Assembly: GCA_002269645.1 (NCBI GenBank)
Contig: NIVC01000319.1
Coordinates: 372,001-436,000, forward strand
Source: Macrostomum lignano
Lineage: Eukaryota
Reading direction: 5' to 3'
Length of the DNA: 64,000 bases
The first letter of the stretch is position 1. Every line of letters begins with the position of its first letter. Shown piece by piece: positions 1 to 57,886 of this stretch. The notes beneath the pieces were generated by a model. That model saw nothing but the letters and a program-made list of their open reading frames with translations, did no database searches and was not told where the DNA came from. A program made the translations under genes and the position numbers.

Positions 1-79
1 AAAGCTACCCTTTGATCTAAAAAGAGTCACTTGAGCTGTTTTTATCGTCGATAATGACTCAGACGTGCTCCATTCGCAG

Positions 80-781
80 ATGGACCGGTTATCGGTGCGC
101 ATTCGCGAGGGCACAAATACACCCCGGGTGACGAGCGGCCTCCGGTTATCAAACTTGCCGTCGAAAGCAGATTTCCTAATTCGAAAATAATGATGCAAAT
201 ACCTTTGAAAACATTTCCTCCGCCTCTAATATTAGTCAATATTGCTGGCTTTGAAGTCGGCTCGAGTTTCCTCGTAGTGAAATTGGAGGCCTGTTTTTGC
301 GGCCTGAATCCGCGTAGGCAAGGGGTTGGCTGGATGGGAATATGTTCGGTTTGTCAGGCCGCTTATTAATTCACTGCAACGGCTTCGAAGCCCTTCTGGA
401 CCAAAATAGACAGTCCATGCGAGTTGGAACGCGTGCTGCTGACGGCTTTCAGGTACGAAATGGACAATAATATTTTTCGACAGCATATTTTCAAGGCGTT
501 TTTTAATCTATTTTTTATGCTTCTTCGGTTCAGTGGCACCTGGATAGTTGTCTCAGTTTCTCTTTCTGACATCTTGTTAATAAGGGCAGCAGGAGTCAAC
601 CTTGCAGTTTGGAAATTAATTACACACTAAGCAGTGCGCCTGCGGAGCCTTTGATTTTACCTGCAGCTTCAAACTCGAAGTCCAAGTTCAACTAATCTTT
701 TAGATGCCCTTCTTCGACGAACTCAATGTCAAAGCGAGTACTGAGAATTTGAGCTATCAATTTTGCAAGACACAAGTCTGA
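80..781 (+). CDS. Candidate small spliced gene fragment antisense to the Hv intron (exons ~80-127, 358-452, 704-781), product unknown
   Basis: The splice sites are phase-compatible: ttcgcag|80, 127|GTGACG, ttgtcag|358, 452|GTACGA, and actaatcttttag|704 (branch-point-like ACTAAT). The joined frame reads ..GPVIGAHSRGHKYTPGGRLLIHCNGFEALLDQNRQSMRVGTRAADGFQMPFFDELNVKASTENLSYQFCKTQV*. No recognisable homology. Confidence 0.28.
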
Positions 782-812
782 TTCAGATTCCATTGTACAA
801 TTATCTACTCAC

Positions 813-1336
813 CTCGAACTTCTCTCGCACAAAGTTCCGACCGAGGCAGACAATTTTCAGCGCCACCTCGAGGACGAACAGGCCGAGAATCCCAATGCTG
901 ACGAAGTGCAGCACGGCTGAGACGTCGTGCAGCACCTTGGCGTGGCTGAACTCCTGCTGGAAGTTGGCGAACGCCGAAGTCGCCGACGAATACGACCGGT
1001 TGGTGTCACCCCAGGCGGCGGCGCCGGCGTCGCTGGCGACGTGTCGACGCAACCGCGGCTGGTGGGACCCGGCTACCGACGGACTGGGCGAGCTCGCTCC
1101 GGGCTGCCCGCCAGCCACCGAGGAGGTCACGTTGCATGAGATGCTGGAGTTCTGACTCAGCGTCAGGAGCACGTCGGCCATGTTGGTCACCAGGCGCTCG
1201 GCAAACTGAGGCGACGACGTCAGCTCCGGACTGAAGGCCGGCAGCAGGAGGCCTCGCTCGCCGAGCTGCTTGGCGAATGTTCGATTGACGAATCCGGCAG
1301 TCTGCACGAAGGCGTCCTCGAGCTCCTGCTTCTCGC
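813..1336 (-). CDS. HVCN1: Voltage-gated proton channel (Hv1-like) exon: long S1-S2 loop + S2 helix
   Basis: VLHFVSIGILGLFVLEVALKIVCLGRNFVREKFE aligns to human Hv1 S2/S2-S3 ([34 protein letters not shown]), keeping H140, F150, E153, K157 and E171 equivalents. Acceptor ttgcag|GC at 1336 (phase 1); donor GAG|GTGAGT at 813. Confidence 0.92.
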
Positions 1337-1974
1337 CTGCAATTCGCAAATTTGTGAGGCGCCGGTGTTTCGGATTCAGGCAATTTTGAGCTTGAGAAGT
1401 TTGGAGTTGTGAAACCGACCCAGCGAAATAGCATCGAGACAAAGTGACCGACTCGCTTTGGGTGGATCCCTAGGATAGCAGCTCCATTTCCGATTGGAGT
1501 CTCCTACCATAGGGTTTTTTGCATCAACTGATAGCTCGTATCGGGATGCAGTGCTCGGTGCTGCAATCCATTGGTTACACAGCCACATGGACTCGAGCTT
1601 CAGCTCTGCTAACTCTCATCTGTTTTCTACATGTCTTCATCCCTGACTAATCCTTTGGGATAACTAAAATCAACAGCATTGAGCTTAAATTTCCCGAGAT
1701 TCCGAGAACCCTTTAGAAAATCTCTCGACTGCGTAAGCAGTTTCCATCATCAACAAAATTCTCCGCTATTCGGCCATTTTCGAATATTCCGTCCTTGCAG
1801 CCTCTTCCATCATCTTCCTAAGCCCCTTTCAGGTAAATCTCAAATTCCAAAGATTTCCACAAACCCATGCAGATTAAACCTGGATGCGGTGTGCATCCCG
1901 GATGGATGCATCGGACTCCAGGAACGATGGATGAATAAATTATGGAGGCTTAAATCGGAGAATAAACCCCACCC

Positions 1975-2160
1975 AGCATATCCTGACAGCCCACAGTCAG
2001 GCACTGAGCATATCCTGACAGCCCACAGTCAGGCATTCAGCATATCCTGACAGCCCACAGTCAGGCACTGAGCATATCCTGACAGCCCACAGTCAGGCCC
2101 TCAGCATATCCTGACAGCCCACAGTCAGGCACTCAGCATATCCTGACACCCCACAGACGG
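1975..2160. repeat. 32-bp minisatellite, ~6 copies, each with a CCTGAC-N8-GTCAGG hairpin
   Basis: The unit agcatatcctgacagcccacagtcaggcactg recurs at 1975, 2007, 2039, 2071, 2103 and 2135. Confidence 0.95.
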
Positions 2161-2183
2161 CACCTATAGTCTTGGCTACTTAC

Positions 2184-2563
2184 TGGTGATGGCCTTGATC
2201 TCCAGGATGATCTCGGCGATTACAATGACGGCGTCGATGAGCACGAAGGCGCAAAGGATGATCTGCACTACGTTGGACCGGATTGCGTACAGCAGCCGCT
2301 CCTTCCATCTGAAATGCCGGTGGCGGGAGGAGCGCCTGAGGCTTCCGCTGGCGTCGCCATTTGCCGCCGCCGTTGCAGCTGCCGCCGCCGACCGAGGCGT
2401 GGACGGCAACGTCGGCGACAGGAGGCTGAGCAGCGACGATGAAGCTGACGAGGAGGAGGCGGCGGCAAACAGCAGCGGCGGCCTGGCCGGTGGCCCGCCG
2501 CCGAGGGCTCCTCCGTCGTCGCATTCATCGGATTCGTCACCGGATGACCGGTGGCGATAGCGG
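2184..2563 (-). CDS. HVCN1: Hv1-like exon: N-terminal cytoplasmic segment + S1 helix (common exon)
   Basis: SNVVQIILCAFVLIDAVIVIAEIILEIK matches human Hv1 S1 ([28 protein letters not shown]), including the selectivity Asp (D112 equivalent) and E119. Donor ACC A|GTAAGT at 2184 (phase 1) joins in frame to the 1336 acceptor. The frame is open to a phase-2 acceptor gggcgcag|C at 2563, with no ATG inside the N-terminal part. Confidence 0.92.
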
Positions 2564-2590
2564 CTGCGCCCAAACCGAGGCAGCTTGACT

Positions 2591-3036
2591 GCTTCTGTCT
2601 GCTTCTGTCTGCTTCTGTCTGCTTCTGTCTGCTTCTGTCTGCTTCTGTCTGCTTCTGTCTGCTTCTGTCTGCTTCTGTCTGCTTCTGTCTGCTTCTGTCT
2701 GCTTCTGTCTGCTTCTGTCTGCTTCTGTCTGCTTCTGTCTGCTTCTGTCTGCTTCTGTCTGCTTCTGTCTGCTTCTGTCTGCTTCTGTCTGCTTCTGTCT
2801 GCTTCTGTCTGCTTCTGTCTGCTTCTGTCTGCTTCTGTCTGCTTCTGTCTGCTTCTGTCTGCTTCTGTCTGCTTCTGTCTGCTTCTGTCTGCTTCTGTCT
2901 GCTTCTGTCTGCTTCTGTCTGCTTCTGTCTGCTTCTGTCTGCTTCTGTCTGCTCCTGTCTGCTTCTGTCTGCTTCTGTCTGCTTCTGTCTGCTTCTGTCT
3001 GCTTCTGTCTGCTTCTGTCTGCTTCTGTCTGCTTCT
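2591..3036. repeat. (GCTTCTGTCT)n 10-bp satellite, ~44 copies
   Basis: Near-perfect tandem array. Confidence 0.98.
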
Positions 3037-4726
3037 CCTGCTTTTCGATGCTTCTAAATCCTTCGGGGTCCAAGTTTGTCAGCTCAGATAAGGCCGAGTC
3101 TTAGGAAGGCCGCACTGCTCAGTTGTCGGACTCTTTTGATCCGGGTCAAGCAATGCCCACCCCCCCCCTCAGCCTCAGCCGGTGCCAACCCGCGGAGAGC
3201 ATCAGGGAAGGCAGGGAGCGAGTTGTCCGGAATGCCTGCTCCCTATTGGCCCAGTGAGATTGGATGCTCAGCTGAGGAGTTCCAGACGGAGGCTTGAGCA
3301 GGGAAGGGACCATGAGCTGCTTGTTGATTAAAATAGGTTGTTTGTTAAACCGCTTCGATAGCTTTTGAATCCAAGTCGCTTTATTTGGTGCTTTCGATCG
3401 AAAGGATTTGGTATTTAAATCCCTCAATTGCGACATTCAGTGGTCAATTTTTTAACTCAGACACAGATTTGTCCTCTTTTAGCTCGAGATTGTGCCGAGC
3501 TGAGAGAAAGGCCTGAGGGAGCAGAACTAAGGTCAGGCCAGCTTCCCAGACTAATTACCGCTGGGTTCCCCCGGCTCTCGGGAGAGTCTCGAACTCAGAC
3601 TAAGTGCGGCCGCTCTGTGACAGCTCGCGTCTCCATCAAGGCATCAAAGGCTCCGGGAGGGGGGAGCTGGAGAGGCGGCCTCTCTGTGTGCCCCTGGATT
3701 CCTGGGAATTCCCAGCTAGCAGCGAAGGTAGCGAAGACGAGGCGGCGTTGTCACGGAAACGAGGACTCGAGCAGGGAGCTCCGGAGGCTGAGTCTGGGGC
3801 GGCGGCGGCTGTTTTTTGACATGGAAATTTTCCAGTTTGCGCGCAACAGACGCGGTGGGGGGCATTTTCGTGCATGAAACTGCTGCAAAGATATAAATTC
3901 TGCCGTGTCCATCAAATGAGGGAATATTATTTGAAGGGCTGCAGACACCCTGGCACAACGCCTTCGGCGACATCGTCCAAACCAGTGCTGACGGCAATTC
4001 TGTCCATTCCGCTGACTTCTGAGCACACAAGCGCGCGGATACCGCATGTACGCAGGCACAGCACTCATACACTCGCTCACACAGGGTGTACAGAGGCCCT
4101 GAACTTTTAATGGTCAGGCATGTACACTCTGTGTGCCTAGGGAGTTGGACTTCATGGGACTGATCGAACCAGGGGCTGCAGAGCTCCGTTGCCTGTCCAG
4201 ATGTGTAGCTCGGGATGTCCATGACTCGGCTGTCATTTTGCTGCTGCGAAGGGGGCAAGGAAGACAAAGCGGCGGGTTTTCCCCGCTCCCCAATCATTGA
4301 TCCCTTTGCGAAAGCAAGTCAGCTGCTCACAGTCACCGCCCTTTACATGCAGAAAAACTGAAGGAGAGGCAATAAAAACCAGCTCAGACAGGGAGAGTGA
4401 AAGTGAGTTTATTGTATTGGATTATGATTATTATTATCGCACACGCATTGTCCCGGGCACAAAGGCCGGTGAAAAAAGCTGCCGATCCCCTCTTTTGAGC
4501 ACAAAGGCGAGCGGACGGAAAATCCAGGATTAAAACAAAAGGTTTGGCAGGGGAAACTCCGGCAGGGGAGGCTTCGATCGCGAATTAAAAAGCTGGGCGG
4601 AACTGCCGCCTTCCGGTTGCTATGGGATATTTTTAGCTGCCTTGCCATACGAGCTCGAAATTCGATCAATTGGTAGACGGCCGATCCGCTCAGTAGCCGA
4701 ATAATGTGTTTTAAAAGTACACCATT

Positions 4727-4925
4727 TTAGCAATCCACTTCTTTTATTCATCCTTGACGTTGGCTAGATTAGCAATCCATTTTATCCAATTCATATCTGA
4801 TTAGCTAGATTAGCAATTCAATTCTATTCCTTCATTCATGATTGGCTGGATTAGCAATCCATTCTGTTTCTATATTAATTCAGTGCTTTGGCTAGATTAG
4901 CAATCCATTTTATCCAATTCATTCA
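4727..4925 (-). repeat. Degenerate inverted copies of the 40-bp minisatellite at 5501-6390
   Basis: ttggctagattagcaatcca motifs (~5, spaced ~41-47 bp) are the reverse complement of tggattgctaatctagccaa. Confidence 0.85.
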
Positions 4926-5500
4926 TGATTAACATAAACCCAATTTTACGCGTGCTGCAGAATACGCAACAGAAGCATTAAAGAGTCAAAGGAAAAATGA
5001 ATAAACAATTTCATCCTTAAAACTCTATCCATTTGCAAAACACGCATAGAAAATTTAGCTTTTTCCTACTGTCAGTAGTGCAATATGTCAGAAATCTAAA
5101 ATACAATATTTTTCTGTAACCAAAACCGGCTGCCCTCTGCAACACGCCAAGGGATATCGATTCCGGGGATTACTGGGCTGCACATGGAGGGGAAAGTTTG
5201 TTTTGGGACAAGTTTGAGCTTTAAGAAGATTAGCTGTCGATTGCCGCTGCAGACTAAGCTAATTACCAGCGCCTCTATCCCGCTGCCGGGATCTGAAAGG
5301 CCGGCCCCTGCGACTCATAATCTGCTCCAGTCGATCATTCTCTGTCCCCGGGGATCCGAGACGGATCTCCCCTTGTCTTGAAGGCTTTCAGTTTCTGTGC
5401 CATTATTTTTAAACTGCAAACCGGCTTTCTGTCAACTGGCCCGCCGGGACGCCGCCTCAAATCGATGAGGGATATTGGGCCTGCAGCTGCTGCCTGTTCG

Positions 5501-6390
5501 CAATTGGATTGCTAATCTAGCCAACCATGGATTTGCTAATACAATGGATTGCTAATCTAGCCAATCATGGATTAGCTAATACAATGGATTGCTAATCTAG
5601 CCAATCATGGATTAGCTAATACATTGGATTGCTAATCTAGCCAACCATGGATTTGCTAATACAATGGATTGCTAATCTAGCCAATCATGGATTTGCTAAT
5701 ACAATGGATTGCTAATCTAGCCAATCATGGATTAGCTAATACAATGGATTGCTAATCTAGCCAATCATGGATTAGCTAATACAATGGATTGCTAATCTAG
5801 CCAATCATGGATTTGCTAATACAATGGATTGCTAATCTAGCCAATCATGGATTAGCTAATACAATGGATTGCTAATCTAGCCAATCATGGATTAGCTAAT
5901 ACAATGGATTGCTAATCTAGCCAATCATGGATTTGCTAATACAATGGATTGCTAATCTAGCCAATCATGGATTTGCTAATACAATGGATTGCTAATCTAG
6001 CCAATCATGGATTAGCTAATACAATGGATTGCTAATCTAGCCAATCATGGATTAGCTAATACATTGGATTGCTAATCTAGCCAATCATCGATTAGCTAAT
6101 ACAATGGATTGCTAATCTAGCCAATCATGGATTTGCTAATACAATGGATTGCTAATCTAGCCAATCATGGATTTGCTAATACAATGGATTGCTAATCTAG
6201 CCAATCATGGATTTGCTAATACAATGGATTGCTAATCTAGCCAATCATGGATTAGCTAATACAATGGATTGCTAATCTAGCCAATCATGGATTAGCTAAT
6301 ACAATGGATTGCTAATCTAGCCAACCATGGATTAGCTAATACAATAGATCGCTAATCTAGCCAATCATGGATTAGCTAATACAATGGATT
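5501..6390. repeat. 40-bp minisatellite, ~22 copies
   Basis: Unit tggattgctaatctagccaatcatggattagctaatacaa, period 40. Confidence 0.98.
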
Positions 6391-6427
6391 TCAGCTCAAG
6401 CAACAGCAGCGGTAAGAAATCACTCAC

Positions 6428-6553
6428 GACTTTTTTCTCCGCTTCGTATTCACGGAGCCGATTTCGCTCTGCAGGATGGCCAAGTCAATGTTGTCCTTCT
6501 GCAGCTGCTTGATGAACTTTTTGTTGTTCATCCAGCCGAACTGGTAGGAGTAC
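6428..6553 (-). CDS. Candidate upstream Hv exon A (first exon from ATG 6531, or internal phase 2-2 exon)
   Basis: Reads YSYQFGWMNNKKFIKQLQKDNIDLAILQSEIGSVNTKRRKK and ends AAG TC|GTGAGT (phase 2). A possible acceptor cccgcag|G lies at 6553. Coding-like codon usage. Confidence 0.55.
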
Positions 6554-6681
6554 CTGCGGGCCGGTGACAGCTTGACATTCAAATGTACCTTCTTTGCTTC
6601 AGAATGCGAATCGTTGAAATTTTGATTCTTTATGTCCTGCTTTCGGCTTGGATTTGGTTTGCTTGTGTTATGAATCATGCT

Positions 6682-7664: not shown

Positions 7665-8493
7665 CACCCTTATTTAGTCCCAGCACTTGAACACCCAGAA
7701 TGAACAGCAGCTAAGAGAGGAAAGGCCTTAACAGGGGCTACAATAGACTGGGCAGTGCTGAGTTTCATGTATGTTTCGCTTCAACAATCTTCACACGGCT
7801 TCCGCTCCGTGCCCTTATAGGTTAAAACTGCCCGGGTTTTCAATAAAAACTTCCTTAAAGTTTAACGAAAAGAAAAGAAATGCGAGCGCAAATCTGGAGT
7901 GTTTCGCGTCTGGATCAGCGAGCCGGAGCGGCTGGACTTCAAGCTGAGTTGGCAGGCCTCGCGATTCCCCAAACAACTGCAAAGAGTGCGCGCGGCGCCT
8001 CGAACTTTCGAATAAACGGCGTCGTAAAGCCGCAGCCGCAGCCGCAGCAACTACGCGCTGCAGAGAAAGCAGAAGAAAGCCATTTTAGTATCCGCCCAGA
8101 GTTCGAGAGCGCGCGGCGGCGGAAATGTGTCCCTCCAAAATATTTTTTGCTTGCTGCATCCTCTGCGCCCGGTGCAGCTGCGCAGAAAGCTGCTGGCACA
8201 GCGGATCCCCAGGCCTGCCCGCCCCCGCCCTGGGTGTCCAGCTGCTGCTGATAGCCGCTGGTCTTAAAATGATGCGGTGTCGCTCCAGCCCCGGCTGCCA
8301 GGGGTGGGGGGGGAGCTTCTCGGGTCGGAGGAGAAACCCGAATTGTGGAAAAATATTTACTTAGAAGGAAAAAGTCTACAGGTGCTCCGGGACGGCAGAG
8401 AATCGTAATTAAGATGAAGTGGAAGCTGCTTCGCTGTGTGGTAAAGTAAATGAGACAGGTTTGATTTCATGGAAAAGGCATTGAAAGAAGACG

Positions 8494-9572
8494 GTCACTC
8501 AGACACAGTCACTCAGACACAGTCACTCAGCCGCAGTCACTCAGCCACAGTCACTCAGACACAGTCACTCAGCCACAGTCACTCAGACAGTCACTCAGCC
8601 ACAGTCACTCAGACACAGTCACTCAGACAGTCACTCAGCCACAGTCACTCAGACAGTCGCTCAGCCACAGTCACTCAGACACAGTCACTCAGCCACAGTC
8701 ACTCAGACAGTCACTCAGCCACAGTCACTCAGACACAGTCACTCAGACACAGTCACTCAGACAGTCGCTCAGCCACAGTCACTCAGACACAGTCACTCAG
8801 ACACAGTCACTCAGACACAGTCACTCAGACACATTCCCTCAGACACAGTCACTCAGACACAGTCCCTCAGACACAGTCACTCAGGCAGTCACTCAGCCGC
8901 AGTCACTCAGACACAGTCACTCAGACACAGTCACTCAGACACAGTCACTCAGACAGTCACTCAGCCACAGTCACTCAGACAGTCGCTCAGCCACAGTCAC
9001 TCAGACACAGTCACTCAGCCACAGTCACTCAGACAGTCACTCAGCCACAGTCACTCAGACACAGTCACTCAGCCACAGTCACTCAGACACAGTCACTCAG
9101 ACACAGTCACTCAGACACAGTCACTCAGACACAGTCACTCAGACACAGTCACTCAGACACATTCCCTCAGACACAGTCACTCAGACACAGTCCCTCAGAC
9201 ACAGTCACTCAGGCAGTCACTCAGCCGCAGTCACTCAGACACAGTCACTCAGACACAGTCACTCAGACAGTCACTCAGACACAGTCACTCAGCCACAGTC
9301 ACTCAGACAGTCACTCAGCCACAGTCACTCAGACACAGTCACTCAGACACAGTCACTCAGACAGTCGCTCAGCCACAGTCACTCAGACACAGTCACTCAG
9401 ACACAGTCACTCAGACACAGTCACTCAGACACATTCCCTCAGACACAGTCACTCAGACACAGTCCCTCAGACACAGTCACTCAGGCAGTCACTCAGCCGC
9501 AGTCACTCAGACACAGTCACTCAGACACAGTCACTCAGACAGTCACTCAGACACAGTGACTCAGACACAGTC
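8494..9572. repeat. 14/12-bp minisatellite (CAGTCACTCAGACA)n with higher-order variants
   Basis: Tandem array; the 389-aa ORF over it is repeat-derived. Confidence 0.97.
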
Positions 9573-11235
9573 GCAGGGGACACAGGGAACCTTTCGCTCA
9601 TGAAAAACACAGTCAATCGTTTAACCAAAAACAGGTGATAAAAAGCGCAGATCCGGAAACGCGAAGATGTCACAAATGGTGGGGGGCGCGGGCGGGGCGG
9701 TGGAATCGGGTGCAGATGGGGATCCCAGATTCCGAGGGGTATCGGGTGGTGTTTCATTCTGCGGCCCCACTTGAAGGCAGCAAGTTGCGATGCGGCTGTT
9801 TCTCACGCCGCCAAGCGAGTTTGTTTATCAGAACCGCACCGCCGCAAGCAAGTGCGCGAGGAGGACACCGGCAGGACCAGCTGCCTCTCGACTCCAATCG
9901 TCGCGCAAAAGTCCAAATATTCGGTCCCGTGGCGGGGGAGTTTTGTTTTACTGCGTCCCATTTTTGTTATAAACAAATGTCGATTTAGCAATCCGGGGGT
10001 TAATGCCTCAAGCTGCTGCACTGACGGTTATTCGAGATCCAAGCTCCGATCCACCGATCGGGTTCAAGACTTGACCGATCATCCGGGCGGAGCCGCTGAC
10101 CCTGGCTCTGCTCGGCCATGGGAACTCGGCCCTGTCGCTGCCACGTGCCCTGAATGACAGAACTGATTCAAAGCGGCCGTGAGCCTCGGCTCCGTCTTTT
10201 AATTAATGACGCCCAGCCTTCCTTTTACCCAGGGACAGCGGCAGCTCAGCATCGGAGCCGAGCGGGAAGAGAAATGGACTTTGAGCGATGGAAACTCCTG
10301 GAATGAAGGGAATTCTAGCGCCAATTTCCGATAAAACTCCTTCTTGGGAGAGGACTTTCCAAATGCCTATCCGCGTGGGCCCGGACATTCAATCGAGTTT
10401 GGCCTCAGCCTCTTTTGTGTCCCCTCCGTCTCACGGCTGGCTGCGCGGCTCCGAGTTTTATGCGGCGGCGGCCGTCCTCTCTCTGACTGAGATCAGACTG
10501 ATCGCTATCCCACGAAGTCCGCGCGCCGCCCGTGTTTCTCTATCGATATTGAGCTCAGCCAGACCGGCTCCATGATCTATGATTTATTGCCAGCTGAGTA
10601 AATTGCAATCTCTCTAGTCTCTATTTATTCATCAGTAGCTGCGGTGGTTGTAGCGGCGCAAACTGGATCGATAATGGATCGATAAAGGAGTGAGGTGGAC
10701 GGCCCAGGGAGGAGGGCGGTTGTACATGTACATTGCGAATGCACATTGATTCAATTGATGGGTTGAATGGCAGAGGGTGGGGCGATTTAATTTGGGTTCC
10801 GGGGTGCTTTCCGCCGCCCACTGTGTTTGGGGTGGGTCCCGGCGCGCACTTGTCTCGGGGCTGGGTGCGCCGCGGCCTAGGCGGGGGTGGGTGTCAGTGA
10901 GGGCTTTCGTGCTTTGTACCCGCCTCGCACTGTCTCGCTTCGCTGGGCTTGCGTAGAACGCACATTGATTCAATCGATGGGGGAATGGCGGAGGGTGGGG
11001 AATGATTCAATTTGGGGTTCAACACAGGAGGCTGTATTGAGGGTGAACCAAACCCCAGGGCGCTGAGAATGTACATTGTGTGACAATGAGAAAACGCGTA
11101 CGCTGCGGAATAGGCCTGGCTGCCCAATTATTGCCTCCTTGCTGGCTGGCAGCACTCACAGCCCTCACTCAAACTAACTGACCAAGCTCGCCAGGCCAAA
11201 CTGAGATGCCTGCACCGAGGGCTCCTTGAGCTCAC

Positions 11236-12160: not shown

Positions 12161-12450
12161 TGGCTCACCACTTCAAGGATGACTAAAGTAGCGTCTACAA
12201 CTGAGTGGTTAAGTAGTCCATCAGTTCTTCCCTCACTGCCTTCCTCACAAGAAAGCTCAAATTTTAATTCAGATAAACGGCCTGCTGATGACTGCTGAGG
12301 TAAAACTTATATGAAGTATAGACTTTAAAAACACGATGCCCTACTTATTTGTTTGTGGTTGCTTTAAACAGTAGTATGTATTGCAAATGCTCTATTTTTT
12401 CCAAAACTTTTTTTGTTGACTAAAGCTAATTAGATCTTAACCTCAAAAAT

Positions 12451-13103
<653 letters not shown>

Positions 13104-13682
13104 GGAATTGCCACGAATCCCAGCACCAAGTTGTCTTATCTGCCTTAGGCCACGGGGGCTCACCTATCGCATGCGGCTGTTGAGCTAATCCTCCCAGCCC
13201 TTAATCCCCATGGAAGCGGAATAGGTATTCAGTGAGTTGCCAGGCGCCGGTTATTCCCAGCTGATTAGCTGTCCAACCGGGCGAGCAGAGCCCTCTCTGC
13301 CCACTGAAGCAGTCCACGGGGGGGGGGCTTTGCAGTTCTCAGCTGAGCTCTGGCGTGAAAGGCAAAAATCATCATTTAAGTAGAATTCGTGAAGAGGCAG
13401 CCCGTCCTCCGGACTCTCTAGCAATCGCCTGTTATTGCCTGTTAGCGACTGCGTGCTGTTCTTTGGGGATATCCGGAAAATAAATTAATAACCAGCTAAT
13501 ATAATTAGGCTTCAGGGAGTTGGGAGATAATGATGATTGGGAAATGGGAGATCTATTTTTCTGACTTAAATATCAGCAGCAGCAGCAGCACCTGAAGTTT
13601 GAAATTAAATTTTTAAAAAAGCCAATTTTCGCTAATCTCTTACCCATAAGTGCTAAAAATTAATGAGTCAGGAAGTGAAAGC

Positions 13683-21432: not shown

Positions 21433-21997
21433 GTCAGGTTAATATAGTGTCAGGTGGATATAGTGTCAGATGGATATACATGTAGTGTCAGATAGATATA
21501 GTGTCAGATGGATAGAGTCAGCTTGTGAGCGTACGAAGGACTTTATTAGGAGCAGAGAATTTTTCCATTAAAAAAGTAAGCAGACAGAGAAATTGGGATG
21601 AGCACGATTTTGTAATTCCAGCTCCCAAAAGTGCTGCTCCAACGAGGCGCAGAAATCTCCCAGTCCCGGAGGATCAGTGCGGGCTCAGGTAGGGGATCAC
21701 TCAGCCAAAAAAACAATTCATAATTCAGTTTGCTGAGCCACCAGAAGCCACAGCTTGCGTGACGCACTTGCTGCATGTCTCAGGCCGTTTTTAGGGCCGG
21801 AGACCCCACGGACCTCTGCGGCCTCAGAACTGAATTTTAGAAGTTTGCCGCAGCTGCTGTCACCAAGGCGGGTCAATCCCATCAGTTTGGGGAGGCTTGA
21901 ATCCTTAATCCATAAAATTTCAGCGAGCGGCTGGCTCGGCGCCAGGGACTTGCCGTATCTGTCAGCCTGTCTATCATCTGATCACTACTCTAGACCG

Positions 21998-23002
21998 ACT
22001 CCTCTTCTCTCCTTCTCTCCCTTCTCTGCCTTCTCTCCCCTTCTCTCCCCTTCTCTCCCTTCTCTCCCTTCTCTCCCCTTCTCTATCCTTCTCTCCCTTC
22101 TCTCCCTTCTCTTCCCTCCTCTCCCTTCTCTCCCCTTCTCTCCCCTTCTCTATCCTTCTCTCCCTTCTCTCCCTTCTCTTCCCTCCTCTCCCTTCTCTCC
22201 CCTTCTCTCCCCTTCTCTACCCTTCTCTACCCTTCTCTTCCATTCTCGCCCTTCTCTCCCTTCTCTGCCGTTCTCTACCCTTCTCTCCCTTCTCTCCCTT
22301 CTCTCCCCTTCTCTCCCTTCTCTCCCTTCTCTCCCCTTCTCTCCCCTTCTCTCCCTTCTCTCCCCTTCTCTATCCTTCTCTCCCTCCTCTCCCTTCTCTC
22401 CCCTTCTCTCCCCTTCTCTATCCTTCTCTCCTTTCTCTCCCTTCTCTCCCCTTCTCTCCCCTTCTCTCCCCTTCTCTATCCTTCTCTCCCTTCTCTTCCT
22501 TCTCTCCCCTTCTCTCCCCTTCTCTACCCTTCTCTACCCTTCTCTCCCTTCTCTCCCCTTCTCTCCCCTTCTCTACCCTTCTCTTCCCTTCTCTCCCTTC
22601 TCTCCCCTTCTCTCCCCTTCTCTCCCTTCTCTCCCTTCTCTCCCCTTCTCTATCCTTCTCTCCCTTCTCTCCCTTCTCTTCCCTCCTCTCCCTTCTCTCC
22701 CCTTCTCTCCCCTTCTCTATCCTTCTCTCCCTTCTCTCCCTTCTCTTCCCTCCTCTCCCTTCTCTCCCTTCTCTCCCCTTCTCTCCCTTCTCTACCCTTC
22801 TCTACCCTTCTCTTCCATTCTCGCCCTTCTCTCCCTTCTCTGCCGTTCTCTACCCTTCTCTCCCTTCTCTCCCTTCTCTGCCCTTCTCTACCCTTCTCTT
22901 CCCTTCTCTTCCCTTCTCTATCCTTCTCTCCCTTCTCTCCCCTTCTCTACCCTTCTCTACCCTTCTCTACCCTTCTCTCCCCTTCTCTACCCTTCTCTCC
23001 CC
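21998..23002. repeat. CT-rich (polypyrimidine) degenerate satellite
   Basis: About 1 kb of cttctctccc-like units. Confidence 0.97.
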
Positions 23003-23484
23003 TATAGTATCCGTTCTCTTACTTGCCACTAGAAATTCTCAAATAATTGCTGGGCGAAACAGAACCCCCCCTTGTTTTCAGCTGCCAGCCGGTTTCTTGA
23101 CCGCCTGACTGATTGATTAACAACAGCTCTCGAACGGGAAGACCCCCCAGTCCTTTGCTGTCAGCTGTTTAAACGGATCGGCAATCAAGCGGAGAGAGCG
23201 GCAGGACCGGCCGGCAGTAGCGCGGCTTTTTTAATTGGACGCACTGGCCGACGCCACACTCAGCGCGCACTTTTTCGCCGACTTTCTGATTCCTGCGTCG
23301 ATCGTTTTTCTTTTACTGCTTTCGGGAAGCTCCGCAGATCAGAGAGTCTCTCGGTGGATCGATAAATTGATTTTTAATAAAACACTCGCAGTGCACACAA
23401 ATTGTTCCTTTTTGGGGCTTTTGCACTCGAGAATAACTTTTGCACCGGAAAGAATGAAATCCAATCGCAAAAAAATAAACTCAC

Positions 23485-26295: not shown

Positions 26296-26569
26296 CCGGG
26301 AGTCTTCAGTCTTCCTTTCTTCCAGTCTTCCATGCTAGTCTTCTGCTAGTCTTGCTGTGCTTCTGTCATCCGGTCTACATTTCTGAGCAAGTCTGCCACC
26401 CTGCCCCTTCTCCGCGACACTGCGTGGCGACCTGTCAGACAGGGAATGCAATCAGTGTTTTGCATGTGTTGGTTTTTGGTTTGTTGAATTATAAGGAACC
26501 ATTGCAGAACGCAACCCAGACAACGTTGGATTCTGTGAGCCTCATAAACATAGGTATCGTACTTTGACG

Positions 26570-27235
26570 GGGGGAGAGGGGAACAGGGGTAGAGGGGGCG
26601 AGAGAGAGAGGATCGAAGAGAGAGGGGGAGAGAGGAGATTGGTGAAAAGAGAGAGGGAAGAGAGAGGAAGAGAGGGGGAGAGAGGAGAGAGGGGAGAGTT
26701 GACAGGTGACAGAAAGGAAGAGAGGGGGAGAGAGGAGAGTTGGGAGAGTTGACAGGTGAGAGAAAGGAAGAGAGGGGAGAAGGGCAGGGCAGGGGGCAGG
26801 GCAGGACAGGGTAGGACAGGGCAGGGCAGGGCAGGGCAGGGCAGGGCAGGGCAGGGCAGGGCAGGGCAGGGCAGGGCAGGGCAGGGCAGGGCAGGGCAGG
26901 GCAGGGCAGGGCAGGGCAGGGCAGGGCAGGGCAGGGCAGGGCAGGGCAGGGCAGGGCAGGGCAGGGCAGGGCAGGGCAGGGCAGGGCAGGGCAGGGCAGG
27001 GCAGGGCAGGGCAGGGCAGGGCAGGGCAGGGCAGGGCAGGGCAGGGCAGGGCAGGGCAGGGCAGGGCAGGGCAGGGCAGGGCAGGGCAGGGCAGGGCAGG
27101 GCAGGGCAGGGCAGGCAGGGCAGGGCAGGGCAGGGCAGGGCAGGGCAGGGCAGGGCAGGGCAGGGCAGGGCAGGGCAGGGCAGGGCAGGGCAGGGCAGGG
27201 CAGGGCAGGGCAGGGCAGGGCAGGGCAGGGCAGGC
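26570..27235. repeat. AG-rich tract followed by (GGGCA)n, ~90 copies
   Basis: Purine-rich tract, then a pentamer array. Confidence 0.98.
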
Positions 27236-27454
27236 ATAGAATTCTAGATAAAACTTAACTTATGCAATGGTTAGGCCTAGTAGAGCCATTTGATTTTTTT
27301 AATCTTAGGCCAAGGTCCTAAGCTAGTCTAAACCTTATTTTAGTAAAACTTATTCTTAGACCCTTTGCCTCTAATTAGGGCCTAACAGTAACAACTGGTA
27401 ACTGGCTAATTCTAGCCAAGCCTATCTACAAAAAGTCAACATGCATGCATGCAT

Positions 27455-32436: not shown

Positions 32437-35344
32437 CAGGGGCGGGCAAACTTTTTAGAGAGTGGGCCAAATAATACTTTCGTTGAACAGCCGCGGGCCG
32501 GAGCTCAATAACGAGGCAACTTTCTTGGTAGATAGAAATACAGTTTAGTTTATTTGCTTATCAAGCTTTTAATAGTATGTTTCATTACAATTAGTGAAAT
32601 ACATGTATCATTGAATATGCAGATATTTGCTTTATATAAAGCCGAATTAACAAATGAGAAGTTTAAGTAAAAATGACGTTTAAAAAATTACGTAACTGCT
32701 CTTACATCCGATGGCAATAACATCAGCGCTGATGAAAAAGTTATTAGTTACTTGCTATAGATGATACAGTTGATATTTAATGAAGGAAAATAGTACTAGC
32801 AATAGAAAAAATGGACAATAAAAAGTGACATTGACAGGGAATTATAATAGGAAAGATACAAAAAGAAATACATTGACAAAATGCTCGAACAATGATGGGC
32901 AGTGATAGCATGCCGTTAGAGGAGATATTAGTGACAAATTTTGGTTGACAGACATGCCCAATCTACAGTCTGTTAGCAGAAATTCAGTCATTTGAACTTA
33001 ATGAGATGGGTGGTACTGTCTGCCCTGAAGAAGTGCTTCAAAATCCGGCTTGATAGACGAAGTAGACAGCAGAAGGATATCATTAAGATGGCGGTCTGAA
33101 ATCTGGGAACGAAGGCGAGATTTGGTGAAGCTCATTTTGGAAAACAGCTGTTCGCAGCAATAGGTGCTCCCAAACATGGCCACAATACGTTGAACATGGG
33201 CGATGTAGTTTGGAAAGTTGTTGGATGGGAGAACAAGGTCCCGAAAGAAGGCTAGAGGGGAGGAAGTGCGGAACTTTGCCTTCAGTCCATCGTTGTACTG
33301 CAGCTCAACCAACTCCATCTGCAGGGCAGCTGGGGCATCATCCACCGAGCAGTCAAAGGGAGCAGTGAGGAGCTTGAAGTCCACAGCCAGGCGTCTGACT
33401 CCTGCAAAGCGGGAGGCAAACTCCTCCCGCAGAGAAGCCACAACCCCTGCGCAAGTGACCAGGTCCACGTCATCTGGGGCACAGGCAGCAAGACGAGGAA
33501 AGTGCACAAACTGACCAGCAGTCAGCTGAGCCTCCCACAAGCGTAGCTTGACCTCGAATGCAGTGATCTCAGCGTGCATGTCCGTCACAAGAATTTCTTG
33601 GCCTTGAAGTTTTATATTGAGGGCATTCAGGTGTGCAGTGACATCAGTCAGCAGGGCCAGGCGAGCAAGCCATTTTGGGTCAGAAAAGCAGTCCGCATGG
33701 GGCAGATTCTTCTGGCGCAAAAATGTGACAATCTCCTGCTGCAGGTCACACACACGAGAAAGCATGGCCCCACGGCTCAGCCAGCGGACTTCGCAGAAGT
33801 AGAGCAGGTCTCCATATTGCGTATTCACATCGTCCACTAGAGTCTGGAACTGGCGATGGTTGAGGCTGCTAGAGAGGATGGAGTTGACAACTTTCACCAC
33901 AATCGACATGACATCAGCAAGTTTGGCAGACTTGGCGCACAGGGCCTCCTGATGAATAATGCAATGCATCTTTTGTATTGGCTGGGTATGGCCGGCAGCC
34001 TCACAGTGATGCACTAGGAGTGATGCGGCGCCTTTCCTCTCTCCAGTCATTGCTGGGGCACCATCGGTCGTCACACACACAAGGCGAGAAAGATCAAGTG
34101 AGTGCTGCTCAACACACTGAAGCACAGCATCAAAGATGTCCTTGCCAGTGGTGGTGCCATGCAGTGGGACAAGCTGCAGAAACTCCTCGTGAATCTTGAG
34201 GTCAAAAGTGACTCCTCGGATAAAAATGGCCAGCTGGGCTGTATCTTTCATGTCAGTGCTCTCGTCAAGAGCTAGGGAGAAGGCAACTAGATCAGAGCAG
34301 CAGGTCTTCAGCAAGTCGTGCACATTGTCCGACATCTCCTCAATGCGCCGTCGAACAGTACGGGATGAGAGGCTCACGCTCTCAAAAGCAGAACGCTGTT
34401 CTGGACAGACAGAGTTCACCACAGTCACAAGGCACTCCTTGATGAAGTCCCCATCCGAGAAAGGCTTCATCCGGCAAGCTAGTAGATGGGAGACCTCGTA
34501 GCTTGCACGAGTCACCTTGTCGGCCTCAGTGGTCTGCTTGCGGAAGAGCAAAGTCGTCTTCTGCAGGTTGCCAGACAGCTTTGTGATAGCTTCTTTCTTC
34601 TTATCAGCAGGCATTGAAGCATAGGCTGATGTTTGGTGATTAGTTTCCCAGTGGCGACGCACATTGAATTCTTTAAGGACGGCCACAATCTTAAAACAGA
34701 TAAGACACTGCGCCTGGCCAAAGCGCTCAACAAAAAAGTACTTCTCCTGCCAATCAGCTTTAAAGGCCCGACACTCGAGATCTACTTTTCTCTTTTTAGC
34801 AGGTTGAGGTGTAGTAGACATGATTAGATAGATAGATGGAAGGCACACTGTGACACTGAGGGAAATTTTATTTTAGGGGAACTTTTAGTTAATAGGCACA
34901 TAAATAAACAGATTCGGGGGGAGGTGGTCTACCAACAGCAGGCTGCAGCCTGCTAAACAATGCAGGGGCCAAACCAACTCTTTTCTCTCTGGATAATATA
35001 ACAATGTCTAAGGCTTGATAGGAAGACTGCTAGAAAGGGGAAGAGAACTTATGGACGTACGCCACGTGCCCAGAGGGAAAGACAGCCAAATTGAGCTTAA
35101 GGTTGGGCACAGCCCATACCTTCGAATCTTAGAATCTGACAATATACTATATAAAGGGAGAGGGGAATAAGTCTTGTTTGCTTATTAGAGTCTAGACTCC
35201 TTAGTAGAGCCTTAGAATCTGGAAAATCTAGTGCCAGACTTATGCGGGCCAGATTTTAATGCAAATGAGAAGCTATGTGGCGGGCCAGAAAATAAAGCCT
35301 CGCGGGCCGGATCTGGCCCGCGGGCCGGAGTTTGCCCGCCCTAG
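32437..35344 (-). mobile_element. Autonomous hAT DNA transposon, Buster/SPIN type (2908 bp)
   Basis: 16-bp TIRs CAGGGGCGGGCAAACT / CTAGGGCGGGCAAACT (2 mismatches), perfect 8-bp TSD CCTTACAA with central TA (32429-36, 35345-52), and GCGGGCC subterminal motifs. Confidence 0.96.
32998..34821 (-). CDS. hAT transposase (Buster/SPIN, GTF2IRD2/EPM2AIP1-like), 607 aa from first ATG, uninterrupted
   Basis: NLS PAKKRKV; BED-like CLIC..HWETNH; catalytic ALDESTD, TTDGAPAM and STYCCEQLFS; CIIH motif; EVRWLSRG. Confidence 0.95.
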   Translation of the reverse strand: MSTTPQPAKKRKVDLECRAFKADWQEKYFFVERFGQAQCLICFKIVAVLKEFNVRRHWETNHQTSAYASMPADKKKEAITKLSGNLQKTTLLFRKQTTEADKVTRASYEVSHLLACRMKPFSDGDFIKECLVTVVNSVCPEQRSAFESVSLSSRTVRRRIEEMSDNVHDLLKTCCSDLVAFSLALDESTDMKDTAQLAIFIRGVTFDLKIHEEFLQLVPLHGTTTGKDIFDAVLQCVEQHSLDLSRLVCVTTDGAPAMTGERKGAASLLVHHCEAAGHTQPIQKMHCIIHQEALCAKSAKLADVMSIVVKVVNSILSSSLNHRQFQTLVDDVNTQYGDLLYFCEVRWLSRGAMLSRVCDLQQEIVTFLRQKNLPHADCFSDPKWLARLALLTDVTAHLNALNIKLQGQEILVTDMHAEITAFEVKLRLWEAQLTAGQFVHFPRLAACAPDDVDLVTCAGVVASLREEFASRFAGVRRLAVDFKLLTAPFDCSVDDAPAALQMELVELQYNDGLKAKFRTSSPLAFFRDLVLPSNNFPNYIAHVQRIVAMFGSTYCCEQLFSKMSFTKSRLRSQISDRHLNDILLLSTSSIKPDFEALLQGRQYHPSH

Positions 35345-36265: not shown

Positions 36266-39200
36266 TCAGATCTCGAGCTCCATACCGATGTCAGGCAGAT
36301 CCGGGTCGCCTTCAGACAGCACTTCCGGATGGCGGAGGCTCGGCTCGAACAATTGGCTGCCGCGCAGGTCAGGCTGAGCTGCGACTGGCTGTTCTGGAGC
36401 GGGCTGATCGGCTGGGTCGACTTCGCTTTCATCGCTCGACTCGTAGGGCAACATTGGCCGCTCTGTCTGGCGCGGCGGCTCCTGCGGTCGATCTGCCATC
36501 ATCTGCGGCACCTTTATGATGTTGTTGCGGTGTACGAGCATTTCAGCTGGGCGTTCCCGTCGGGCTGTTGCTGGCTGGATCCAGTAGGCTACTTCGCCGA
36601 CCCTCCTGTTGACCTTGTACATGCTTTTGTACGGCCGGTGAAACTTCGGCAGCTCGCCCAACTCGAGCTTCGGGTTGGCCAGGCAAACCAGGTCTCCGGG
36701 CTGCAGTTCCACGGGCTTGGGTCGGTTCTCGTAGTACTCTTCACGGCGTTGGATCTCAGCTCGCAATCGCTGTCGCACAATCCTTTCAGTCTCGGCCAGT
36801 CTACGCTGATGCTTTGCGATGTACTCGGGGAGGTCCGGCGATACGTCCAGGCGGTCTAGGGTGTTATCGATCGGATACCGGTAGGGCACTCCGTAGATGA
36901 CGTAATGCGGCGAGAATCCCGTCGTACGATTGACAGCTGATCGCAAGGCTGTCAGAGCGGCTGGCAACATCTTGTCCCACTGTTGATGATCTTCGAGAAG
37001 ACAAGTGAGCACCTTCTTGATGTTTTTGTTGCACGATTCAGCTTGACCGTTGGCCCAGGGCGAGTATGGCGGCGTCGTTGTCTGCCGGATGCCATAGACT
37101 TCGCAGAAATGTCGAAACTCGTGCCCTGTGAACTGTTTGCCTTGGTCCGAATGGATCCACGCGGGGATTCCGGTGATCGGGAAGACTTGCTCTTGCAGGA
37201 GAGTTATTATCGTCTTGGCGCGCTGATTCTTCATGGCGAAGGCGAAGGGGTACTTTGACGTCGTGTCGACGTAGGTGAGGATGTACTTGTTGCCTCGGTC
37301 TGTCGGGTCTCCAGTGGGGCCCATGATGTCGATCGCACATCGCCCATAGATTTCGCAGACCGGAAATGATTGTACATGCGCTGGGATGCGTCGCCGTCCT
37401 TTACTCTGAGTGCAGGTCTGGCAGGAAGCGACATAGTCGGACACGGCCTTGGCCAGGGCCGGTCGCCAGAACCTCTCGCGCACCTTTGCGATGGTGAGAT
37501 CTCGGCCCATGTGTCCGCAGTAGGGCGAACCATGCAGGTCGGCAAACACTGTGGCGTCGAGACTCTTCGGCAGGACGATCCTCGCATTGTCCTCCTCGCC
37601 AACATCGTCGAGATGGATGACTAATAGTCCGTCGTCTCGGACTTCCAATTGCTCATAGAATGCTAAGAGATTTCGCTCATCTCTTGTTAGATTTAATCGC
37701 TGATTCAGCGGCGGCTTCGGTTGTCGACTTTCAATTAAGTTGATCATCATCGCGATGGCGGAGTCAGCACGCTGATGGGTCTGGAGCTCCTCACGTGTGA
37801 CTGGTCTCGGGATGTGATCAGTTAAGTTCAAAGTTTGGCGTCTGTTAGTCGAATTAGTCGGCGCGGCTTCGGCTGTGGCGGCATGGTTCGGGGTCTGGAG
37901 CTCCCTCCGCATAATCGCTACTCTGGCCGGTTGCCGGGTCGATGAAGAATTTGAGGGCCGATCCTCGTCGGTCATGTCAGCGTCGGCTTCGTCAGCATTA
38001 GATTCGTCAGCAGATGAGAGTGAGTCAGCGGAACTGTCGGTATCAAGGCTGAATCTCACCTTCTTGAACACAGGACGGCGAGCGGGTTGGCAGCGGTCTT
38101 CGTTGGCTGCGCTGTGGTCGCTATCCTCGTCGCCTTCAGCTAGTAGCCGGCGGCCCCTTGACGGGCAACATGTCGTGCTGCTAAAACTGGTGGGCGACCT
38201 CTGTGAGTCCCAATAACGACTGGCAGATGGCCTCGACTTCGTCGCCGGCGGATGCAGCTCTGTCAGCGGCTTGCTGTCGGCTGTCGGTGTTGCGGGCGGC
38301 GTAGTCTCGCCGTTGGACTCAGTTGATTTCGTCGGCGGCTTTCGTCGGTGACGGCGGGTCGGTCGCTTCTTGCTCGGTGGAGGACTAGGGTGGCTGCTGT
38401 CGTGGACCTTCGGCGCCGCTGCGCCAGTTATCGCGGCTGGCTGCTTACTTTGGTCCTCGACGGCGGCCTCTCGCTGAGCCTCCTCCAAACATTCAGCGTC
38501 GTCCTCAGGCCGTCTTGAGAGGCCGTCGGCGTTTTGGTGCTGACTTGATTTTCGATGCTGGATCTCGAACTCGAATTCGCTGAGGCGCTGTAGCCATCGT
38601 CCAAAGATTCCTTCTTGCTGAGTTCGCCTCAGGATGCAGGTTAATGCGGCATGGTCGGTTCGGCAGATGAACTTCTTGGCCAGCAGGTAGAATCTGAAGT
38701 GTCGCATTCCATCTACGACTGCCAAGAGTTCCTGTTTCGTAATCGGATAACGGGCTTCGGCCGGTTTGAGTCGCCGGGAGAAATAGCCGATTGGTCGCTC
38801 TACTCCATCAGCTTGGCGTTGGCTCAGGCAGGCTCCGATTCTGGTCGCAGAAGCATCCGTATCCAGGATAAACATTACTTCCGGATCCTCGCTGAACTGC
38901 GGATACGCGAGCACTGATGTCGAAGTCATGGCTGCTTTGAGCTGATCAAACGCGTCTTGCTGGGCTTTTCCCCATAGACAATTGAAATTTCTAATCTTCT
39001 TTTCCTTGATTAGGTCGTGGAGCGGAGCTGCAAGTTCTGCGTAGCCAGGTACGAATTTAGCATAGTAAGCGCACGTGCAGACAAAACTCTTAAGCTGTCG
39101 GGCTGTTCTTGGTCTTGGCCAGGTTTGAATAGCTTCGATTTTCGCCGGGTCGGTCTTGATTCCATCTTTGGTTACTACGTGTCCCAGGTAGTGGAGGCTT

Positions 39201-40273: not shown

Positions 40274-40282
40274 AGTTGTGCT

Positions 40283-42180: not shown

Positions 42181-42229
42181 AGTAGTGTAGCGTTTGAACG
42201 ACTCGTTGAAAGGGTTTTGGCGTCTCGTT

Positions 42230-42247
42230 ATCCCACCGCTGCCACCA
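42230..42247 (-). promoter_or_regulatory. Primer-binding site complementary to the tRNA-Leu 3' end
   Basis: TGGTGGCAGCGGTGGGAT, 1 nt from the 5' LTR. Its complement ATCCCACCGCTGCCACCA is the conserved eukaryotic tRNA-Leu 3' end. Confidence 0.85.
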
Positions 42248-42248
42248 A

Positions 42249-57877: not shown

Positions 57878-57886
57878 GTGAGCGGC

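Follow-up and report, generated by a model that had tools for sequence, protein, structure and literature searches.

Among voltage-gated proton (Hv) channels, an "unconventional" Hv3-like branch is known from Lophotrochozoa (PMC10377628). Its only functionally characterised member is AcHv3 of the gastropod Aplysia californica, a proton-selective channel with a leak and a voltage dependence of about 60 mV per e-fold, which has a loop of 299 residues between its first and second transmembrane segments (S1 and S2) and an LPWRxxR motif in S4 (PMC10911540; Chaves et al., FEBS J 2022). The same study reports a loop of 79 residues in AcHv2, and its molecular dynamics gave no defined structure for the AcHv2 and AcHv3 loops. 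Large S1-S2 loops have also been described in annelids, bryozoans, and nemerteans, there without the S4 proline, in a review that lists two Hv channels for Platyhelminthes and leaves Macrostomum unmentioned (PMC10377628; Chaves et al., Biomolecules 2023). Because of these published examples, the long loop is a known trait of the branch. Here we describe a gene of the flatworm Macrostomum lignano contained in a stretch of 64,000 nucleotides (assembly GCA_002269645.1, contig NIVC01000319.1, positions 372,001 to 436,000 of the forward strand), hereafter the window. We propose that the locus encodes the N-terminal 385 residues of an Hv3-like channel with a loop that is probably glycosylated and may be cut by a proprotein convertase, a reading to which we give a probability of roughly 0.6.

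The gene lies on the minus strand of the window, where three in-frame exons with canonical splice sites yield a 385-residue partial product that runs from a cytoplasmic N-terminus through S1 and an S1-S2 loop of 138 residues to S2. An earlier note on this DNA had placed the gene at 813-2563, bounds that correspond to the 3′ end of exon 3 and the 5′ end of exon 2. The features are as follows, the paralogue being that of M. lignano represented by the near-identical public models P0001 and P0002 (A0A1I8F401 and A0A1I8HS36):

6428-6678, minus strand: exon 1, with a putative start codon at 6678-6676, encoding the cytoplasmic N-terminus; donor GTGAGT at 6427, phase 2
2564-6427, minus strand: intron 1, about 3.9 kb, holding a microsatellite and 40/41-bp tandem arrays (Tandem Repeats Finder)
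2184-2563, minus strand: exon 2, encoding a low-complexity cytoplasmic segment, S1 (2271-2197), and the first four loop residues, KAIT (2196-2185)
1337-2183, minus strand: intron 2, 847 bp, 48% GC, phase 1, bounded by GTAAGT and TTGCAG; positions 1970-2163 hold a tandem repeat of 32 bp x 6
813-1336, minus strand: exon 3, encoding the remaining 134 loop residues (1336-936) and S2 (935-843), ending ...REKFE; donor GTGAGT at 812
1-812, minus strand: first 812 bp of intron 3, 44% GC; the exons for S3, S4, and the C-terminus fall outside the window, past its left edge
1278-1286, minus strand: N-glycosylation sequon NRT; NET in the paralogue
1125-1151, minus strand: sequon NSS (1151-1143), the single loop cysteine (1136-1134), and sequon NVT (1133-1125); the paralogue keeps NSS..CNVT
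1044-1055, minus strand: RLRR (residues 305-308), candidate proprotein-convertase site PRLRR↓HV, in a Ser/Gly/Ala/Pro-rich stretch
993-1001, minus strand: sequon NRS, not kept in the paralogue, which has a Gly run there

The assignment to the proton channels rests first on S1 and S2. In HMMER alignments to the Hv1 structures 3WKV and 5OQK, S1 (VLIDAVIVIAEIILE) carries the equivalents of D112, E119, and D123 (as Glu), and S2 (VLHFVSIGILGLFVLEVALK) those of H140, F150, E153, and K157; apart from D123, these are the residues to which the earlier note had drawn attention. The selectivity-filter aspartate, equivalent to human D112, has its codon at 2235-2233 in the S1 segment at 2271-2197 (VVQIILCAFVLIDAVIVIAEIILEI), where VLIDAVIV pairs with VVLDALLV in the human and mouse Hv1 sequences. 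The closest database proteins are M. lignano entries named "Voltage-gated hydrogen channel 1", and the named database relatives and solved-structure matches are Hv channels throughout; Hv1 gives the best structural matches, and the only ones below E = 0.05 cover the Hv1 S1 and S2 helices. A Pfam scan of the partial product returned no family at E up to 1, the Pfam ion-transport family being detected only when S3-S4 is included, as in P0002 and AcHv3.

For S3 and S4, no match was found in any minus-strand frame of the window, nor by tblastn with P0001 and P0002. These segments could instead be read from P0208 (UniProt A0A1I8I230), a 129-residue M. lignano protein that is 100% identical to the window product over 86 residues, from GSHQPRLRR to REKFE, an overlap that takes in the fast-evolving part of the loop. 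Beyond REKFE, P0208 continues as IVDAVVIMISFVADIVFVKLESTEVSVMVLFLLWRIVRVING, and database fragments likewise run on as EKFE/IVDA past the end of exon 3; the donor of exon 3 is thus used as placed. The S4 of P0208 is LLWRIVRVING, in which the Trp, the second and third arginines (R2 and R3), and the Asn are kept and the first arginine (R1, R205) is replaced by Leu, and the equivalents of D174, D185, W207, R208, R211, and N214 are all present. Its S3-S4 linker (KLESTEVS) has no His at the H193 position, so that the two-His Zn2+ site is incomplete. The earlier note had called the channel Hv1-like and had counted an S4 without RxWRxxR as a refutation. Its family assignment stands, but RxWRxxR, which PMC10911540 gives as the S4 signature of Hv channels alongside the S1 Asp and four transmembrane segments, is replaced by LLWRIVR, and with the first S4 arginine missing the gene is not a canonical Hv1.

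The placement within the family follows from a profile search of 1.84 billion representative proteins, which gave 589 hits, the best 150 of which we anchored on the S1 Asp and the S2 His. Among these best 150 of 589, the distance between the two anchors is 28 in canonical RLWR channels, up to ~150 in an R1-containing AcHv2-like group, and 106-598 in every R1-less channel (LLW, LPW, VPW, and similar); it is 160 in the window gene and 179 in the paralogue, and every long-loop flatworm relative in this set lacks R1, as P0208 does. The nearest relatives come from cestodes (Rodentolepis nana, Hymenolepis microstoma) and trematodes (Clonorchis sinensis, Schistosoma mekongi), then from the nemertean Tubulanus polymorphus and the bryozoan Bugula neritina, all of them with [L/I]-x-W-R-x-x-R and a post-S4 ...QR.EFRI.LQKRARR. 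Further relatives are found in bivalves (Dreissena, Saccostrea, Mactra, Mya, Mizuhopecten, Mytilus), in the cephalopod Octopus, and in the gastropod Aplysia californica, whose XP_005094274 (980 aa) is AcHv3 (P0059 in the same search). The gene accordingly shares with the Hv3-like channels both the long S1-S2 loop and the missing first S4 arginine (LLWRIVR in P0208). The proline before the S4 Trp (xPWRxxR) that marks molluscs, brachiopods, and phoronids is a Leu in P0208; since other large-loop lophotrochozoans likewise have no proline there, the gene fits the wider large-loop group rather than the mollusc Hv3 subfamily. We are confident in this assignment to the Hv3-like, "unconventional" channels and in the long loop being genuine, and the caution in the earlier note that invertebrate Hv channels may have long loops was well placed, given the AcHv2 and AcHv3 precedents.

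Two side observations concern these relatives. In the trematode proteins P0008-P0012, an insertion of 247-282 residues separates the S1 Asp from the S2 His, and the S3-S4 linker is short (e.g., DVLYVRYVSETAAAMVVLLLWR); two schistosome Hv channels have been said to share an elongated S3-S4 loop (PMC10377628); the mismatch may reflect different genes or a slip in the review. In addition, a set of R1-less flatworm, nemertean, bryozoan, and other relatives (P0003-P0012, P0015-P0020, and P0027) shares an N-terminal motif, ...L.(K/E)DNID...L..E, and a post-S4 motif, (E/K)(K/R)QR.EFRI.LQKRARR, the latter often followed by CKP...KEQT.NALKSIAALTTG. We found no mention of either motif in the Hv literature consulted for comparison; judged from sequence, they may be branch markers or docking sites.

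Comparison with the M. lignano paralogue separates conserved from variable parts of the protein. Identity is 84% in the S1 region, 56% over the first 75 loop residues, 21% in the loop middle, and 81% over the loop end plus S2. Despite this variability, the paralogue loop keeps an N-x-T after S1, NSS, C-N-V-T, and RLRR, and hence three sequons and the cysteine, with RLRR invariant inside the segment that is only 21% identical. The paralogue loop contains a further basic site, RRRKR↓L, 69 residues ahead of RLRR. As a side observation, P0001 and P0002 differ in S4, which reads LLCAHCRVING in the former and LLWRIVRVING in the latter; the P0001 version looks like a compensated frameshift from an assembly or gene-model error and not a real variant.

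The missing S4 arginine also bears on whether the gene still encodes a gated proton channel, as opposed to a constitutive leak, a TMEM266-like voltage-sensor protein with another role, or a decaying duplicate. Besides the S4 of P0208, such a view could draw on the proton leak and the voltage dependence of the likewise R1-less AcHv3 (PMC10911540), on the very repeat-rich DNA in which the gene sits, and on the fragmentary state of the public models of the gene and its paralogue (P0001, P0002, and P0208 are all fragments without a start Met). Against this, the equivalents of D112, E119, H140, F150, E153, K157, D174, D185, W207, R208, R211, and N214 are intact (those of S3 and S4 in P0208), the frame is open over three exons with a coding-type G+C content at third codon positions (GC3), and the 81-84% identity of the transmembrane segments to the paralogue is a sign of purifying selection; AcHv3, moreover, is still proton selective (PMC10911540). 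We therefore regard the loss of channel function as improbable, and retain the reading as an Hv3-like proton channel.

The 138 residues of the loop lie between EIILEI and VLHD (2196-936, split by intron 2), close to the ~135 given in the earlier note, and the four sequons, the single Cys, and PRLRR↓HV listed there were all found in the minus-strand translation. That the loop is coding and not intronic, as the earlier note had presupposed, is borne out by its composition and by the splice phases. An open frame by itself proves little here, because all three frames are open through the GC-rich stretch, a circumstance that would suit an annotation artefact in which part of exon 3 is intronic or is skipped by means of an alternative acceptor. 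The loop middle, however, has 74% GC and a GC3 of 0.82, against 44-48% GC in the flanking introns, and GC3 stays at 0.82-0.85 in all three loop sections (N-terminal, middle, and C-terminal), comparable to 0.85 in S1/S2. Within exon 3, GTRAGT is nowhere matched at 5 of 6 positions, as it would be at a strong internal donor, and none of the three pyrimidine-rich (70% or more) AGs that could act as acceptors (1231, 957, and 867) has the phase needed to pair with the phase-1 donor of exon 2. Both paralogues hold the frame between the conserved loop ends despite a length difference of 21 residues, with RLRR kept within the variable part, and a long loop is present in every R1-less relative among the best 150 of 589, including the cloned AcHv3. 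On these sequence signals, composition and splice phase above all, we rejected an intron inside the loop and regard an artefactual loop as very improbable.

On which side of the membrane the loop lies follows from the topology of the family. The N-terminus of Hv channels is inside and the S1-S2 loop outside. An extra membrane segment within the loop was considered and rejected: the best 19-residue Kyte-Doolittle mean is 0.75, versus 2.9 for S1 and 2.3 for S2, so that the entire loop should stay on one side. From the established topology, with indirect support from the absence of a membrane-like stretch, the density of sequons, the Ser/Gly/Ala/Pro-rich surroundings, and a coil predicted at low confidence, RLRR would probably be exposed to the lumen or exterior in an accessible segment. 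Its last arginine (P1) lies 46 residues ahead of the S2 His anchor. In 20,000 shuffles of the single loop, the probability of four or more sequons was 0.015 and that of any R-x-[KR]-R was 0.019, a signal that is moderate for the window alone; both elements recur in relatives.

We surveyed this recurrence in 55 R1-less long-loop representatives comprising 8,415 loop residues. R-x-[KR]-R occurs 28 times in these loops. Full shuffles predict 2.2 occurrences and never gave more than 9 in 500 rounds, whereas shuffling within 15-residue blocks predicts 4.6 and gave at most 12 in 1000 rounds; the enrichment is 6- to 13-fold. The motif is carried by 24 of the 55 proteins (2.1 expected), from a flatworm, a bryozoan, bivalves, a cephalopod, and a gastropod, and two convertase-type sites are present in each of P0001, AcHv3, P0035, and P0053. 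Its density per 1000 residues is 3.3 in the loops, 1.3 in the cytoplasmic C-tails, and 1.0 in the N-termini, regions of similar Arg/Lys content. The sites are also unevenly placed, with 19 of 28 lying 24-60 residues ahead of the S2 His (7.4 if uniform), and 17 of the 28 are followed by Ala or Ser. Sequons (N-x-S/T) show a parallel, about 2-fold excess (186 versus 95 +/- 8.6 expected), at 22 per 1000 loop residues versus 9.8 in the tails (2.3 times). The literature searched held no prior report of a family-wide recurrence of convertase motifs in long Hv loops.

The window site matches the furin-type consensus R-X-K/R-R (PRLRR↓HV) and has counterparts in the paralogue and in 24 of the 55 relatives. 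In the conservation check proposed in the earlier note, the long loop is shared by R1-less relatives, RLRR by the paralogue, and the motif by part of the branch, whereas the parasitic flatworms have none. Glycosylation and a furin-type nick are both topologically possible, each with comparative support from the paralogue and from the enrichment across the branch. On this basis we consider the loop likely to be N-glycosylated; cleavage of the channel at RLRR is a more tentative proposal, for which we would put the odds somewhat short of even.

Several findings weigh against this reading, and some of them lend themselves to a different one, in which the loop is an uncut, fast-evolving, glycosylated, and largely disordered spacer and RLRR is kept for another reason. 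At the outer mouth, for example, the motif may then engage lipid head groups or acidic residues, or it may bind sulfated glycans; it may also be partly compositional. The loop middle is only 21% identical between the paralogues and has large indels, and in molecular dynamics the AcHv2/3 loops showed no defined structure (PMC10911540). Enrichment extends to the reverse motif, R[KR]xR (11 versus 2.2), so that part of the R-x-[KR]-R signal must be basic clustering. No R-x-[KR]-R is present in 31 of the 55 representatives, among them all parasitic flatworms (cestodes and trematodes), and the loops of the nearest flatworm relatives contain 3-10 Cys in its place. The His at P1' of the window site is also unusual, sites elsewhere being followed mostly by Ala or Ser, and the 55 representatives are interrelated and include many gene predictions, so that the counts are not independent events. 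The gene model itself leans on sequence signals and paralogue gene models for its exon junctions and on the 129-residue P0208 for S3 and S4, which lie outside the window. We know of no Hv loop in which cleavage has been shown, and the literature searched yielded no report of furin action, cleavage, or glycosylation in connection with the S1-S2 loop of an Hv channel; AcHv3 function in human embryonic kidney (HEK)-type cells was reported with no mention of cleavage or glycosylation, and the one Hv1 cleavage on record affects the N-terminus, in human sperm (PMC10911540 and citation therein).

What speaks for convertase sites over such a spacer is the directionality of the pattern. The forward motif has 2.5 times the count of the reverse motif, K-x-[KR]-K is not enriched (1 versus 2.2 expected), and the sites gather at 24-60 residues before S2 (19 versus 7.4), with Ala or Ser next in line. 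A protease site fits this directional pattern better than a charge patch does, and a directional, position-biased motif of this kind fits convertase sites on a luminal or extracellular glycosylated loop. We consider an uncut spacer quite possible, if not favored, and proceed from the convertase-cut, glycosylated loop.

Could the loop instead bear a folded extracellular module that senses a ligand or ion, as the earlier note had offered as an alternative? The first ~75 loop residues, 56% identical between the paralogues and predicted to be helical, might be taken that way, and the S1-S2 loop is known to tune the voltage range of activation in other Hv channels (PMC7910559). We built an AlphaFold model of the 385-residue product from a three-row alignment and used its secondary structure as a hint only. 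The model is unreliable (mean predicted local distance difference test score, pLDDT, 43.8; predicted template modeling score 0.23), which also limits what it can lend to our own reading. At this low confidence, yet in line with the sequence pattern, the S1 helix extends into the loop (164-209) and is followed by two more helices (213-237 and 253-272), a coil that contains RLRR (273-327), and a helix that leads into S2 (328-384). The pLDDT is below 60 across the whole loop, no Pfam family matches at E up to 1, the structural matches stop at the Hv1 helices, and the loops of different phyla, ~90 to 580 residues long, cannot be aligned. With helices of low confidence and coil, and a loop middle that is 21% identical between the paralogues, a folded module has at best a slim chance, and the alternative in the earlier note finds no support.

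For the glycosylated, convertase-cut loop, the following sequence of events can be envisaged. An Asp-Arg pair would form the proton-selective path, as inferred from the family, and with only two S4 arginines gating would probably be weakly voltage dependent, as measured for AcHv3. The channel may reside in intracellular or secretory membranes, its loop facing the outside or the lumen and consisting of helical extensions of S1 and S2, a further helix, and a fast-evolving linker rich in Ser, Gly, Ala, and Pro. The conserved sequons (N-x-T after S1, NSS, and CNVT) are probably glycosylated, and the linker's RLRR probably represents a site for a proprotein convertase of the furin type, which would act in the late secretory pathway. 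The cut would leave two chains, a glycan-bearing S1 fragment and a fragment spanning S2-S4, whose new N-terminal stretch would measure about 45 residues. These chains would be held together by helix packing, and no intramolecular disulfide could span the cut, because the loop has no Cys downstream of RLRR. Where a relative has two sites, as do the paralogue and AcHv3, the loop would lose a segment by excision. A broader generalization, that Hv3-like channels are routinely cut between S1 and S2 so that the voltage-sensor domain is "split" and its gating or leak is contingent on cleavage, with double-site members losing a loop segment, is conceivable from the motif distribution, and we think it rather unlikely.

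The significance of the locus is of two kinds. The Macrostomum gene is an added member of a branch in which long loops were already known, and it brings a free-living flatworm, a tractable model with RNA interference and transgenesis, into the published large-loop proton channels, which is useful and unsurprising. A modest new lead comes from the convertase motifs enriched ahead of S2: motifs and sequons selectively kept in the loops, the former at a preferred distance from S2, provide a first concrete and testable idea of what the loop is for. If cleavage does occur, proteolysis would take place within a voltage-sensor domain and would provide a novel form of regulation of proton flux, and the odd biophysics of AcHv3 in furin-competent HEK-type cells might reflect a processed channel.

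Some details of the gene model remain to be described. Exon 1 was located by tblastn with cestode and trematode N-termini, which match at 6579-6427 with E down to 1e-10, and it contains a motif, RYSYQFGWMNNKKFIKQLQKDNIDLAILQSE (6555-6463), common to the N-termini of these relatives. GC3 is 0.47 in its first 120 nucleotides and 0.86 in the remainder, so that its 5′ end, whether ATG or trans-splice site, is uncertain. The N-terminus ahead of S1 amounts to ~180 residues in the model, long for an Hv; large intracellular domains are a further trait of Hv3-like channels (PMC10377628), and on the C-terminal side P0208 stops immediately beyond S4. The phase-2 acceptor of intron 1 (gcgcag/C at 2564/2563) agrees with the phase-2 donor of exon 1, and the frame of exon 2 contains no ATG, GTG, or TTG from the intron 1 microsatellite down to 2409. 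Exon 2 ends in a phase-1 donor, GTAAGT, and joins the phase-1 acceptor ttgcag of exon 3 in frame (...EIKAIT-S-EKQELED...); the same ITS/EK junction is present in the paralogue model P0001.

Tandem repeats lie close to these exons. The microsatellite in intron 1, (CTGCTTCTGT)n, occupies 2589-3036 with 45 copies and ends 26 bp upstream of the exon 2 acceptor. All three of its minus-strand frames are open, with RQKQTEADRS repeats, and an open reading frame (ORF)-based reader or gene finder could therefore extend exon 2 wrongly. Intron 1 also holds arrays of 41 bp x 4 (4763-4931) and of 40 bp x 12 or more (5505-6000 and beyond), and the 32-bp x 6 array of intron 2 ends ~20 bp from the exon 2 donor. 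The window as a whole is unusually rich in microsatellites and minisatellites, which give long spurious ORFs, for example, at 8469-9638, 12426-13163, 21755-23032, 26542-27237, 50791-51498, 52104-53030, and 61886-63320.

Other coding features in the window, away from the channel gene, are as follows:

32998-34848, minus strand: intact ORF of 616 residues; Pfam matches to the Spin-doc zinc finger (PF18658) and to DUF4371 are weak and below threshold, at 26.9 and 18.6 bits versus cut-offs of 27.3 and 32.1, respectively; by its sequence it may be a transposase-derived or domesticated gene
~36266-42306, minus strand: adjoining long ORFs of 1335, 206, 266, and 233 residues on one strand; from the ORF list, this looks like a long terminal repeat retrotransposon-like element with a pol-type polyprotein and gag-like parts
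47617-48174, plus strand: ORF fragment encoding a phosphotyrosine-interaction domain (PTB/PID) of the Shc type (PF00640 in Pfam, E = 5.9e-24); best relatives SHC-transforming-protein-like, at 53% identity or less
57478-58197, plus strand: ORF with ...RINKEIEKQVRADFKLSQKVIQLLLLGE, similar to the start of heterotrimeric G-protein alpha subunits; Pfam gave nothing at E ≤ 0.01, probably since it is a short first exon only

Compared with known systems, the gene shares the S1 and S2 signature residues of canonical Hv1 (human HVCN1; 3WKV, 5OQK), from which it differs in the Asp-His distance of 160 rather than 28, and, as read from P0208, in having Leu for R1 and no His at the H193 position. With the large-loop annelid, bryozoan, and nemertean channels (PMC10377628), it has in common both the large S1-S2 loop and the absence of the S4 proline. 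The loops of its parasitic flatworm relatives have 3-10 Cys and no R-x-[KR]-R, whereas those of Macrostomum retain RLRR and contain 1-3 Cys. The closest functional counterpart is AcHv3, which has the same S1 Asp selectivity filter, an S4 without R1 and with Trp, R2, and R3, and a sequon-rich loop with R-x-[KR]-R (sites SRFRR↓S and RRRKR↓S). The two differ in the residue before the Trp (Leu in LLWR here, Pro in LPWR of AcHv3) and in the loop itself, which in AcHv3 is His-rich and cannot be aligned with that of the window gene; the AcHv3 C-terminus is 535 residues long, and that of the window gene lies outside the window.

A parallel for the proposed processing is found in the epithelial sodium channel ENaC, from whose alpha and gamma subunits furin excises a segment. 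By analogy, convertase motifs in the window gene and its relatives would likewise lie in an extracellular segment of a channel subunit, and members with two sites could lose a piece of the loop. Unlike in ENaC, which has an unrelated fold, a cut here would fall within the four-helix voltage-sensor domain, between S1 and S2.

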